A stretch of 64,000 bases of DNA from Adineta vaga (taxonomy: Eukaryota > Animalia > Rotifera), in NCBI GenBank assembly GCA_021613535.1, contig CP075494.1, positions 11,656,001 through 11,720,000 on the forward strand, given 5' to 3'. The position numbers and the translations under genes were made by a program. Numbering within the stretch: position 1 is the first letter of the stretch; each line of letters begins with the position of its first letter. The notes under the pieces are model-generated. The model saw nothing but the letters and a program-made list of their open reading frames with translations. It had not been told where the DNA came from and did no database searches. This document shows positions 32,267-61,922 of the stretch, one piece after another.

Positions 32267-34671
32267 ATGAAAAATACTTTCGAAGAATTGATTGATGTTT
32301 TACCCTTATCTTCATCATTTACATTTGGAATTCGAGAAGTAACAACAATTATTGAAAAACAAAATCTTGATTTAGTTTCATCATTTATCTCGGAATCCTA
32401 TCAAGCATTATTAAAACTCGAATTATGGGCATGGAAAGTTCTCAGCAAAGATTCATATCAATGGATTAATCAACCAAATTATGTTACTTTACTTCATTCA
32501 CTTGCTCTTTTTAATAAAAATTTAATTTATCATTATGATAATATTGACGATGATATCAAAGCTAATCTTCTTCTACCAGATACAATTGATGTAGTCAATG
32601 ATATATTTGAACAAATCGATCGAAATAAAGACGAAAATGATCCATTTATTTATATTGTCAATCTTTGGTTTGATAATCTTTCATTTTTTGTCTATGAACA
32701 TTCTCAATTTGATACATCACCGATTATTTCTCATATAAATGAGTATTTTGGAAAAAATTATCTCATGACAGAACAATTCCTATTCTATTTAATTCAACTT
32801 CTACAAACGAAACTACCACAATCAATATTTACAAATAAACAATTATTTTACATTCGCACATGTTCATTCTCATTAAGTTCATATTTAACTGCTAAACCTC
32901 AAGTTTTTCCATTAACTTCGCGAGAAATTATGAATTATATTGGCAATGATTTTGTTCGAATCATTGATATTCATAGTCATATTATTGAGATGTGGAGCGA
33001 ACAATTATTGACATGTTTAACTCATCTGATTGGTTTTGTATCGGCTTGTTGTTGGTGGGGTGGAGAAAATATTACACAGGTTTGTTCATTATTCTCCTCA
33101 GAACAAGTTGTTTGTTCATATATCAGTGCACTCATTCGAATAATAAGTTATAAACCATTTCATGAACGAATTCAAGCACGATGGACAACCACTGAAACAA
33201 TCCTAATGGACTGCTGCTTGTTTTCTTTGAAAAATGTAGCACAAGTACAGGATTTAATCTGGTTTTTTCGGTCGAAAATTTCATTACCGGATACATTGTT
33301 GACAATTGCTGGATTATCAGTTCATGACAAGATATGTTTACGTGCCTATGTTATCCTAGGAGAAATTCTATGCAATGAACGATTAAAAGATCTACAAATT
33401 ACGGATAATTTAAGTGAGTTTTTCTATGTTATGCTTGAACAAGCTAAGCAAAATTCAACAAAAAAATATAAAGAAATACCAATTGTTCATCTTTTACGAA
33501 GTAAATTCTAAAAAAGTTTTGATTTGTTTTGTTTTTAATTTTGATTCTCTTTTCAGGTTTTTCAACTCTTTCTAAAATTGATGCTATTCAACAGAAAACA
33601 GCAGATTTAAATAAAATTTCACTCTTCATTGAGATGAGTGATCATTATCCAATTGCGTTCGATATTCTTTGGGCACTTTCATTTAATCAAGATATTCAAC
33701 AACAACTTCGTTCAAATATAACATTCATGACAAAACTACTTCGTCTAGCCAAAGAATGTGATAATGAAAAGATGAGAAAGATGACACATGGAATTCTTTG
33801 GAATCTAGAATCGACACATCAAGATCGTACATTAAGAGAACTTAATGATTGGAAAAAATTTGATATAATGATTAGTTATTCACATAAAGATGAAGTTCTT
33901 TGTAAACAAATCTATGAAGAACTTGTCAAAGCTGGTTTTCGTGTTTGGATTGACTTCGATCAAATGCATGGCAATGTTATGGATGCAATGGCACAAGCAA
34001 TCGAACGATCCAATACTATTGTTATTTGTATGAGTGAACAATATCGTCGAAGTAATTATTGTCGAGCTGAAGCACATTATGCATTTCAAAGACAATTGAA
34101 GATAGTTCCGGTGTTATTACAAGAACATTATGAACCCGATGGATGGTTGTTATTTCTAATCGGACAATTATTGTACGTTGATTTTGCAAAGCACGAATTT
34201 CCACGGGCAATGGATTTGTTACTCGACGAAATCAAAGCAGAAGAACGTTCTGAAAGTAGTATTACACCTCTACGATCAAGAACTGGTACTGTTGCTGTCT
34301 TATGTAATGTTCTAACACCGGCAAAAACCTTATCAACCACCGTATTTCCAAAACATATGCAAGATTGGACTAAAACGAATGTGCATGATTGGCTAATTGA
34401 ACATAATTTGATACAAATGTCTCAACTTTTGATAAATTGTGATGGTCGTGGTTTGATATATTTGAATAATTTTATTACCAATGGAGAAACAAAACAAGTC
34501 TTAAATCTTCTTCAAAATGAATCTTACCGGTCAGCAAGTGAAAGTTTATCACTTGTAGAATTATCTTATTTACAATCTTTAATTGAGCAACGAAGACGTA
34601 CTATTCGATCACCATTGAGGCGACGAATTCGAAGAAATTCATACTTGTCATCTTGTTGTCAAACGATGTAA
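32267..34671 (+). CDS. ARM-like/TIR/SAM-like protein, paralog 1 (782 aa; intron 33501-33556; C-terminal CCQTM)
   Basis: Two long ORFs join through a 56-nt phase-1 intron. TIR motifs FDIMISYSHKD, VWIDFDQM, SNYCRAEAHYA, VPVLLQ, LYVDF. SAM-like WTKTNVHDWL...CDGRGLIYL. Confidence 0.9.
33862..34211 (+). repeat. 350-nt near-identical repeat, copy A (TIR of paralog 1); partner at 36532-36881
   Basis: Manual alignment at offset 2670 shows 3 mismatches. Confidence 0.93.
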
Positions 34672-34946
34672 TATTCAAAATCAAACTGATCATATGTTCT
34701 TCCTTTTTCTCTTTGTAAAACTAACACTAAATTCCAAATAAAAATCCAAAACGATCGTTATTAAGAGAGAGAAAAAAAATGAATTCTTTAATTTGACATC
34801 CATCTATCGAAACGATGTCGTTGACTCGTGGTACTGTCACACGCAAAAAGAAATAAAACTAATAAACAATATCACATAAAAAGCAAAGAAAGAAAATATA
34901 AATGTGTATGTCATCAAAACATATGATTCATTGTTAAATAATACGA

Positions 34947-58980: not shown

Positions 58981-59337
58981 TCTGTTCTGTTATTTTTCTG
59001 ATTGTGAAGTCGTATTAAATTGTTATTTCTTTCATGTATTTATACAAATTCACATACAATACCTGTCACTTTCCATTCATAGCTGCACAATTATTGGTAA
59101 TTTCATTCTAATGGGGATATTATTTATCGAAAGAAAATCATTTCATTATCGTATTTTCTGTTATATTCACAGTGAAATAGAAAAAAATGCTGTTTCATAA
59201 TCGAGTATTTTACAACCTTTCGTCCAAAACGGATGAATCAGATAAATAAATCCATGAATAATAACGACGTTTTCTATACAGTTTATTATATTCAACAAAA
59301 TATTGAAGCTGCATTGTATTTGTCTTCAACAGTGTAA

Positions 59338-61922
59338 TTAAGATAAATCTTTTTTTTTCAGTACGTCAGTTTCCCTTCCCAATGCAGCTTCAAATGCTAT
59401 ATCTGTGGTTGTCAATTGCTGATTGTGCTTTTGTTGATACATCAACGATTGAAAACGCGACAGTTCAACCAATGATACACTTTCATTCAGTCGACGAATA
59501 CTATCTTCTTGAAGTAATGATAGTACTACGGATGATTGACCATGTTTCACGTATTTATACAAATGAATCAAACTTCGACCATCGTAATCATTCAAAAGAC
59601 GAGATAGTTGAACAAGTTGATGATCGATCAACCACTGTTGAACTTGTATTTGTGTCCATTCTAGCATTAGATGAGGCTTTGCTGCAGTTGATGGTACTCG
59701 AACGGATGAAGAAATGGCTGGAATAGAAGTTACAATAGTTGTCTCTTGCTTTGATGGAACAAGTGTAATGTTGTTTTCATGATTGTCGTTGGCTCTGAGT
59801 TCTTCCATCAACATTTCCATTGCACGATCAAAGTCATATTTAGTGAAGTCGACATACAATAGTTGACCGATCAGAAATAACAACCAACCATCGGGTTTGT
59901 AGTGCTTTTGCATGAGAACAGGAATAAGTTGTCGTTTTCGTTGAAATGCATAATGTGCTTCTGCTCGACAAAAGTTACTCTTTCGATATTGTTCACTCAT
60001 ACAGATGATGATTGTTTGTGATCGGTCGATGGCTTGTGCCATTGCATCCATGATATTGCCATGTATTTGATCAAAGTCGATCCATACTCGATAGTTTCGT
60101 CGAATGATTTCATCGTAGAGCTGTTTACAAAGTACTTTATCATCATGCGAATAGCTGATCATGAAATCGAAGGTGTCTTGAGGAGAGATATCCGTTGTTG
60201 GATGATGTTGACGACCGATTTGTAGATTCCAAAGAATACCATTCGTAATTTGACACATTTTATCGCTATCACATTCTTTAGCCAAATGAACCAATGTAGA
60301 CATGAAGGATTGATCGGAACGAAGTTGCTGTTGAATATCACTATTGAACGATAACGTCCATAGAATATGATAGATAATTCGATATTGTTTAGATACATCA
60401 ATGAGAAGTTGAATTTTGTTCAAATCAGCAGTTCTTTGTTGTATGGAGTCATTTTTAGATAGAGTGCGAAAATCTGCAAAACAAATGTATGCAAATCAGT
60501 CTGCAAGTTATTGTAGAAGAGAAAAAAATATGTAAGGTATGAAGAAACATCGAGCACTTCCAGGATTCATTATGTAATCTCATTCTATCTAGACAGATAA
60601 AACATTTCTATCATCATCATCATCATCACTTTTCGCTGAGACCCTTTTTCGCCTGATCGTGAGTGTAAAAATAAATTTTATGATTTACCTCTCAAAAGAT
60701 ATTCGATGGGTATCTGCTTGTATTCTTTTGATGGATGTTGCCAAGCTTCTTCAAGCATTTTGAAAAAGAAATCAGCCATACTATTGGTAATTTTCAATTC
60801 TTTCAATTGTTCATCTGTTAAAACTTCACCCATAACAACATACGCTCGTAAACAGATTTCATCGTATAGTGATCTTTCAGCCACGACCAGAAGTGTTTCT
60901 CGTATTATTGAATTTGATCGAAAGAACCAATTAATGTTTTGAGTTTTGACAATATTTAATAAAACCATCAATATTGAATCGATCAATACAGTTTCATCAT
61001 TAGATCGTACGGATCGAATTTCTTTATGAAATTGATCATAACTTAGGATATGAATCAATTCTTGTACATGATTACATGTTATCTGTTCCGTTGCAAAGGG
61101 TACTTTTATCTGTGTTCCATTCTTTTCATCTGACCAATAACATTTCGCAATAACACCTGTTAAATGTCCAATACATGCTATTAAATCTTTATTCCACAAC
61201 ATAACTGTTGAACTATGAATATGAATGATTTGTAAATAATCATCACTAAGATATCGAAGAATTCCATCAGCTGTATAAAAACATCGATGATCTTTTGAAC
61301 CCAAATAGGCAAATAATGAAAATAAACTTGTTTTAATATAAAATAACATTTTAGCTGTAAAAATCAAATCTAATTGATGTAATTGTCGAAGTTGAAATAA
61401 ATAGGATTTAAATGGTTTCTTCATTATATAATTACATATTATGTATTGATTGATATGGTCAGTAATAGATAATTTATTTGAATGAGGATTATCATGTAAA
61501 AAGTACGAATGACTATCAAACCAAAGACTAACAATGGAAATAAAAGGATCATTATCATCGGTAGTTTGTTCGATTTGTTCGAATATATGATTGATTTGAT
61601 CAATCGTAACAGGAAATAGAAGAGTGGCTTTTCGATCAATTTCGATAGTATTATAATCATAGATCAATTGTTTATTGAATGAAGCAAGAGTATGAAATAA
61701 TTCTCGATAAGAAGATTCATTAATCCATTGGTGAGAACTTTGACTAAGAAGTTGCCAAGCCCAATATTCGAGAATTAGTATCGAATCAAAACATTGAGAA
61801 GCAAATATTGATAAGGATTCATCGATTTGTTCTTGAAGAATAAATTTTGTTTGATCAAGAGCTTTCGTTGATGTAAAGGATGTAGAAAATTGGGTAACAA
61901 GTTGCTCAAAATGATCGTACAT
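59338..61922 (-). CDS. ARM-like/TIR/SAM-like protein, paralog 5 (789 aa; intron 60474-60688)
   Basis: Same architecture. The in-frame join reads YLLR|DFRTLSKNDSIQQRTADLNK. Ends KKKDLS*. Confidence 0.88.

Follow-up and report, generated by a model that had tools for sequence, protein, structure and literature searches.

Five ARM-TIR-SAM genes in two convergent clusters of the bdelloid rotifer Adineta vaga: a branch of a catalogued solenoid-TIR family with candidate NAD+-cleaving activity

We analysed a 64,000-nucleotide stretch of the genome of the bdelloid rotifer Adineta vaga (assembly GCA_021613535.1, contig CP075494.1, positions 11,656,001 to 11,720,000 of the forward strand), hereafter the window, in which positions are given unless stated otherwise. 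A first-pass annotation, made from the sequence alone, had marked five paralogous genes with ARM, TIR and SAM domains here and had read them as a rearranged SARM1-like enzyme family. All five genes, g1 to g5, were found intact; each locus carries two long open reading frames (ORFs), and removal of one GT..AG intron restores a single frame. On the + strand, g1 (I4U23_025685; 32267-34671) encodes 782 amino acids (aa) in exon 1 (32267-33500) and exon 2 (33557-34671), with a 56-bp intron at 33501-33556. It is followed by g2 (I4U23_025686; 34947-37329; 776 aa), with exons at 34947-36183 and 36236-37329 and a 52-bp intron at 36184-36235. The other three genes are on the - strand: g3 (I4U23_025693; 52911-55311; 783 aa) has exons at 55311-54078 and 54028-52911 and a 49-bp intron at 54077-54029, g4 (I4U23_025694; 56510-58980; 781 aa) has exons at 58980-57744 and 57618-56510 and a 125-bp intron at 57743-57619, and g5 (I4U23_025695; 59338-61922; 789 aa) has exons at 61922-60689 and 60473-59338 and a 215-bp intron at 60688-60474. 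Since g1 and g2 lie on the + strand and g3 to g5 on the - strand, the two clusters converge, and about 15.6 kb of unrelated genes separates them.

The intron is of phase 1 in all five genes and falls in the same alignment column, between ...LL[RQLG] and [SGD]F..LSK, which agrees with the common intron position noticed earlier. The motifs IIWALSF/ILWALSF and GILWNL were also recovered, and SN(Y/F)CRAEAHYA is present in every gene. Each spliced product is identical to the public A. vaga protein named above with its gene. RNA-like contigs of ~1.76 kb, from two runs of one study, begin at the g2 ATG and omit exactly 36184-36235, while a DNA run retains this segment. This shows that g2 is expressed, with its intron removed at the modelled sites. 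The coverage of g1 in the RNA-like contigs was thin. The possibility that these are pseudogenes was ruled out by the intact frames, the expression of g2 and the conserved orthologues described below. In the DNA run, five substitutions at about half depth were clustered in 37264-37321, near the 3' end of g2, and 14 fixed differences were scattered over the remainder of 32100-37500. Both probably reflect variation between alleles or strains.

We modelled the full-length g1 protein with AlphaFold2 on 59 homologues (predicted local distance difference test, pLDDT, 84; predicted template modelling score, pTM, 0.77). The model consists of helices alone up to residue 501, an alpha/beta unit at 513-638, a disordered stretch at 641-671, a five-helix bundle at 684-761 and a disordered C-terminal tail with pLDDT below 50. 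When the whole model was searched with Foldseek, full-length SARM1 (E 7e-6) and beta-catenin (E ~3e-5) were the top matches, with a whole-chain TM-score against SARM1 of ~0.2. An earlier model of exon 2, built on the five paralogues alone, had pLDDT 50 and left the TIR domain unmodelled, and it was used just for two ARM repeats.

The TIR domains are encoded in exon 2 at 33859-34236 in g1 (aa 513-638), 36529-36906 in g2, 53346-53723 in g3, 56936-57313 in g4 and 59794-60171 in g5. Pfam TIR_2 (PF13676) matched exon 2 of all five genes (86.4-90.4 bits, cut-off 28; E 1e-24 to 1e-25, 4.6e-25 for g1), whereas the receptor-type TIR model of Pfam gave 28 bits compared to 89 bits for TIR_2. The strands and helices of the g1 TIR model were compared with known structures by VIA. 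The TIR domains of SPARTA, Hydra TRR-2 and SARM1 superposed with Z 17-18 and a root-mean-square deviation (rmsd) of ~2 Å. SPARTA was the best structural match (Z 18.2, rmsd 1.9 Å), the SARM1 TIR gave Z 17.6 and rmsd 2.0 Å over 123 residues, and the TIR domains of MyD88, IL-1RAcP and MAL gave Z 15.6-16.7.

The g1 solenoid matched APC, p120-catenin, plakophilin and designed ARM proteins by VIA (Z 15-16), and its final two repeats matched ARM repeats of beta-catenin with Z ~10 and rmsd 1.6-2.7 Å. Since helical repeats can give generic Z values under ~13, the margin of the ARM match is modest. At the sequence level, support for ARM repeats is confined to aa 440-500, where V-ATPase_H_N matched 7 of the 59 homologues, Arm_2 matched 3 of the 59 and plakophilin was found with E 0.86. 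Elsewhere in the N-terminal 505 aa, Pfam and PDB profile searches gave nothing above noise, and the ESM Atlas feature scores for this region were below 0.9 and serve as leads only.

The C-terminal domain lies at 34357-34605 in g1 (aa 679-761), 37012-37254 in g2, 52974-53222 in g3, 56570-56812 in g4 and 59419-59667 in g5. In the g1 model it is a five-helix bundle with pLDDT 74-91. Its profile matched SAM domains exclusively in the PDB (liprin-beta 6e-6, SMS1 6e-4, ETV6, Shank and neurabin), and Pfam SAM models were found among the 59 members (SAM_3 in 30, best 7.7e-7; SAM_PNT in 20; SAM_2 in 18). Taken singly, the five window genes gave SAM matches below the Pfam cut-off. A complex prediction with two SAM copies (aa 672-765) scored 0.01, which weighs neither for nor against self-association.

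The segments of the model, the fold matches and the SAM profile together support the order ARM, TIR, SAM. The model supports an ARM-like alpha-solenoid at about aa 1-505, TIR_2 at 513-638, a disordered linker of ~35 aa, a single SAM domain at 679-761 and a short tail. The domain order in the first-pass annotation thus stands.

The glutamate of SN(Y/F)CRAE is invariant in all 59 homologues. Its codon is at 34069-34071 in g1 (Glu583), 36739-36741 in g2 (Glu581), 53511-53513 in g3 (Glu584), 57101-57103 in g4 (Glu585) and 59959-59961 in g5 (Glu583). In the PDB sequence search, g1 Glu583 aligned with the glutamate of WCxxE in Cat1, TLR2 and RPV1. A recent preprint superposed predicted TIR structures on E85 of ThsB (Hurieva et al. 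2026, bioRxiv 10.64898/2026.04.20.719644), and its Table S2 places the C-alpha of Glu587 of the Adineta steineri protein A0A813RLV3 0.76 Å from ThsB E85. In our alignment this Glu587 corresponds to g1 Glu583. The claim that the conserved glutamate takes the catalytic position is borne out by this distance in a family member and by its alignment with the alpha-C glutamate of plant TIRs.

Three of the five genes end in a CaaX box, with the cysteine at position -4. These are CQTM in g1 (34657-34668), CEIM in g2 (37315-37326) and CSMM in g3 (52914-52925). A CaaX box is present in 40 of the 59 homologues, and there is often a second cysteine and basic residues ahead of it; in g1 the box sits in the predicted disordered tail and is preceded by another cysteine and an arginine-rich stretch. 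From their sequence, these tails would anchor the proteins to membranes by prenylation. The two remaining genes end without a CaaX box (...GENSDV in g4 and ...KKKDLS in g5), and no relic CaaX exons or frameshifts were seen 3' of them.

Neighbouring genes share almost identical TIR stretches. The DNA of g1 and g2 is 99-100% identical across the TIR (33859-34236 versus 36529-36906), and g3 and g4 are 98-100% identical over the last ARM repeats and the TIR (TIR 53346-53723 versus 56936-57313), while the flanks of both pairs are 50-65% identical. The TIR of g5 is 93-95% identical to those of g3 and g4. These stretches are gene-conversion tracts. Between the clusters, the TIR domains are 70-80% identical in protein and 72-78% in nucleotides, which shows that purifying selection acts on the TIR as well.

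The A. vaga assembly (100.8 Mb, six contigs) holds 12 full-length copies of the family, seven within ~105 kb of this contig, plus four distant ones. The seven are the five genes of the window and two more full-length members, one of them I4U23_025703, on the - strand at contig positions 11756004-11760064, ~36-40 kb past the end of the window. Genome-wide, at least 95 TIR_2 matches in A. vaga were above the Pfam cut-off, and the number of TIR-domain proteins given for this species in a preprint on fungal attack is 120. A profile of the N-terminal part (exon 1) found 124 representatives among 1.84 billion, and every named one is from a bdelloid (Adineta, Rotaria or Didymodactylos). By sequence, neither this profile nor word-index searches found a non-bdelloid homologue. 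A shape search of the ESM Atlas returned mollusc clusters with Arm and TIR_2 and chlorophyte clusters with Arm, SAM_2 and TIR_2 at TM ~0.5.

In a tree of the family, orthologue clades of g1 and of g2 are present in Adineta as well as in Rotaria. The partner of g3 is an A. ricciae protein, and the group that holds g4 and g5 contains Adineta sequences only. The tree comes from a short search with Shimodaira-Hasegawa-like approximate likelihood ratio test (SH-aLRT) support only, and conversion tracts may disturb its topology. The first-pass annotation had proposed that variable N-termini act as a receptor repertoire, and this was not upheld. The mean pairwise identity is 0.43-0.45 in the ARM solenoid, about the same as in the SAM domain (0.47), and the g1 and g2 lineages are kept in two genera. 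What stands out is the homogenised TIR, with 0.74.

Some distant bdelloid relatives carry other modules. In two Didymodactylos carnosus proteins of 1747-1865 aa (P0097 and P0223), the N-domain and TIR_2 are combined with an ion-transport (TRP-like) domain and an extended array of ankyrin repeats; from these matches, each would be a TIR within a channel-like protein. The A. vaga protein I4U23_004505 (P0122, 1038 aa) contains the N-domain, TIR_2 and an ankyrin repeat, as well as a weak match below the cut-off (E 0.005) to an NAD:arginine ADP-ribosyltransferase.

The preprint of Hurieva et al. (10.64898/2026.04.20.719644) groups solenoid-TIR proteins at 40% identity in a cluster, A0A0B7AZE4_1, represented by Arion vulgaris A0A0B7AZE4. 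In its tables, the members come from a bdelloid, molluscs, flatworms, Brachionus, a cnidarian, a sea urchin, lancelets, gar, tunicates, a choanoflagellate and Volvocales. The bdelloid entry in the tables is A0A813RLV3, with a TIR at 516-645, Glu587 and a 'TPR-clan' solenoid at 281-500, and the same 'TPR' clan label is given there to the ARM region of SARM1. In our set, A0A813RLV3 (P0300) clusters at 90% with P0166, and the full-length identity of P0166 to g1 is 48%. Through this relative, the A. vaga proteins probably belong to cluster A0A0B7AZE4_1. Six other family accessions were not among the listed, non-redundant entries of the tables.

The bdelloid proteins share with this cluster the order of solenoid and TIR. 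Its tested members have ~100 residues past the TIR, and a bryozoan member is annotated with a TIR followed by a SAM domain. They differ from it in that their first 411 aa match bdelloid sequences alone among the 1.84 billion representatives, and in the CaaX tail, the tandem clusters and the gene conversion limited to the TIR. Immunome surveys of invertebrates, molluscs among them, also use 'ARM-TIR' as an established category (Aplysia, PMC9334734). The shape search, the preprint cluster and the immunome category together indicate that the bdelloid genes are a branch, confined to their lineage, of an old family. This family is catalogued in these surveys and tables but functionally uncharacterised, with no A0A0B7AZE4_1 member of demonstrated function.

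Since the genes had been described as SARM1 parts in a different order, we compared them with SARM1. The same three domain types occur in both, full-length SARM1 leads the Foldseek matches, the TIR domains superpose and the catalytic glutamate is kept. However, the NAD+ hydrolase SARM1 (dSarm, TIR-1) has the order ARM-SAM-SAM-TIR, whereas the A. vaga genes have ARM-TIR-SAM with a single SAM domain and a TIR that is not C-terminal. SARM1 was not found among the PDB sequence matches at E<=1, and its structural Z is tied with those of SPARTA, Hydra TRR-2 and MyD88. Moreover, the tables of the preprint place the SARM1 TIR in cluster T1J6E6_2, apart from A0A0B7AZE4_1 (10.64898/2026.04.20.719644). 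The proteins thus lack both the tandem SAM with C-terminal TIR and the specific TIR kinship of a SARM1 orthologue. The reading as a permuted or rearranged SARM1 is not supported, as the SARM1 TIR falls in a separate cluster and SARM1 is missing from the PDB sequence hits; of the earlier description, the ARM-TIR-SAM order with three domain types stood and the special relation to SARM1 did not. There may be a further likeness in location. SARM1 is associated with membranes. For TIR-1 membrane association is stated in a literature abstract, and for the bdelloid family it would follow from the CaaX tails. A quick look through the A. vaga genome for a canonical SARM1 found no adjoining SAM_2 and TIR_2 matches. 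One tandem-SAM_2 locus (C3:7191000-7200000) was rejected as SARM1, as its three SAM domains belong to a liprin-like gene.

The comparison with prokaryotic TIRs gave closer sequence matches of known function. Cat1 was the best PDB sequence match (1.8e-6), SPARTA (TIR-APAZ) was the best structural match, and the TIR_2 type and the glutamate are common to both sides. PADLOC models matched as well (SAVED-TIR of CBASS 1.4e-9, ThsB of Thoeris 1.9e-7). By sequence, the nearest relatives of known function are the prokaryotic enzymatic TIRs Cat1, SAVED-TIR and ThsB, and E-values of this size indicate a shared superfamily and not orthology. In contrast to the prokaryotic systems, the bdelloid genes have an intron and ARM, SAM and CaaX modules and are without an operon partner. 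Horizontal transfer of the whole gene was ruled out by the intron, the eukaryotic ARM, SAM and CaaX modules and the pan-eukaryotic distribution of the family.

We tentatively favour the reading, with a probability of roughly 45%, that these proteins are regulated TIR enzymes, concentrated on membranes and controlled by the solenoid, that cleave nicotinamide adenine dinucleotide (NAD+). The solenoid would keep the TIR inactive, or would serve as the docking site of a partner or ligand. The SAM domain, together with the lipid anchor in g1 to g3, would gather the molecules on a membrane, the gathered TIR domains would pair so that active sites form, and the TIR would then cleave NAD+ to ADP-ribose (ADPR) and/or cyclic ADPR (cADPR). 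For g1 to g5, catalysis, autoinhibition, oligomerisation, membrane anchoring and any part in defence are inferences. Self-association is reported to be needed for the NADase activity of TIR domains (PMC7282519). For animal TIRs of neighbouring clusters, the preprint reports depletion of NAD+ or formation of cADPR that depends on the glutamate; examples are an oyster protein and one from coelacanth, the latter in a cluster represented by a Rotaria sequence (10.64898/2026.04.20.719644).

Several observations weigh against this enzymatic reading. The glutamate is necessary and not sufficient, and TLR2 keeps it in the same alignment. Four isolated A0A0B7AZE4_1 TIRs (from Chlamydomonas, lancelet, gar and tunicate) were inactive in E. 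coli lysates, as their 'Active' field is blank in Table S4 of the preprint (10.64898/2026.04.20.719644). RUN1 and RPP1, both known to be enzymes, are also blank in this table, which means that the E. coli assay gives false negatives. The defence role is questioned by three further points: the N-terminus is not hypervariable, the g1 and g2 orthologue clades in both genera fit a stable cellular role as well as defence, and under fungal attack the expression of only 3 of the 120 TIR-domain proteins of A. vaga changed, all three downwards, according to the preprint on this response.

Membrane-tethered TIR proteins may also work without catalysis. Myristoylated TRAM and PIP2-bound (phosphatidylinositol 4,5-bisphosphate-bound) Mal are adaptors placed at membranes in this manner. 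The bdelloid proteins could likewise scaffold Toll-like or other TIR proteins through the TIR and SAM domains while the solenoid recruits downstream partners, which we consider rather doubtful. The CaaX tails of the 40 homologues would suit such adaptors, as would the Z values of MyD88, IL-1RAcP and MAL, which are nearly equal to those of enzymatic TIRs, and the rank of TLR2, glutamate included, as the second-best PDB sequence match. The same is true of the inactivity of the four same-cluster TIRs, and the at least 95 TIR_2 matches in the genome offer possible partners. A pure scaffold, however, would not need S-N-[YF]-C-R-A-E and its glutamate, which are invariant over 59 diverged homologues, and the score of 89 bits for TIR_2 against 28 bits for the receptor-type model also speaks against an adaptor. 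According to the preprint, moreover, the glutamate is absent from most TIRs of animal Toll-like receptors (TLRs) and interleukin receptors but present in most of the remaining animal TIRs, several of which are active (10.64898/2026.04.20.719644).

The genes might also be housekeeping or stress regulators of NAD+/cADPR or of cell biology (neuronal function, trafficking or recovery from desiccation), with no pathogen sensing and with paralogues split by tissue or compartment. Besides the g1 and g2 clades in Adineta and Rotaria, the N-terminus that is not hypervariable, the few TIR genes that respond to fungal attack and the ordinary neighbours (peroxiredoxin, prosaposin, rhomboid) are in line with this, and the mix of lipid-anchored and unanchored paralogues suggests a division between compartments. 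We nevertheless regard it as quite improbable. Tandem expansion to 12 full-length copies, of which seven lie in ~105 kb, is more typical of defence families, and a homogenised effector domain is likewise in keeping with one. Furthermore, the glutamate-bearing TIRs that have been characterised function for the most part in cell death or immunity (PMC7282519).

The enzymatic reading can be extended to a bolder and unlikely form, in which these are ligand-gated TIR enzymes that a Ras-like lipid tail keeps at membranes and a second animal family of regulated NAD+-cleaving or cADPR-making TIRs besides SARM1. Each bdelloid-wide paralogue lineage would then watch its own cue, and conversion would keep the TIR uniform. 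If the proteins are active, an enzymatic TIR would be wired to a sensor-like solenoid, an oligomerising SAM domain and a lipid anchor in animals beyond the usual models, and parts of the SARM1 type would have been put together independently. Enzymatic TIR activity has been argued to be widespread (10.64898/2026.04.20.719644). If they are inactive, the genes still document an ARM-TIR-SAM architecture that is old and widespread. The bdelloid family makes a compact test set, with twelve paralogues that have or lack the lipid anchor and combine near-identical TIRs with diverged solenoids.

The genes between the two clusters (37893-52305) look ordinary. By Pfam, they include a peroxiredoxin (from 37893, + strand), prosaposin-like genes (41161-43270, - strand) with a further prosaposin-like SapA match (46642-46947, - strand), a rhomboid (48391-49041, - strand) and a zinc-finger protein with ZZ and zf-Di19 domains (49808-50413, + strand). 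Two ORFs on the - strand, 50877-51377 and 51574-52305, had no Pfam match. Directly upstream of g1, the ORF at 31471-32022 (+ strand) reads like the final transmembrane helices of a rhodopsin-type receptor (FMSFCLNIFLYSLCGNRF).

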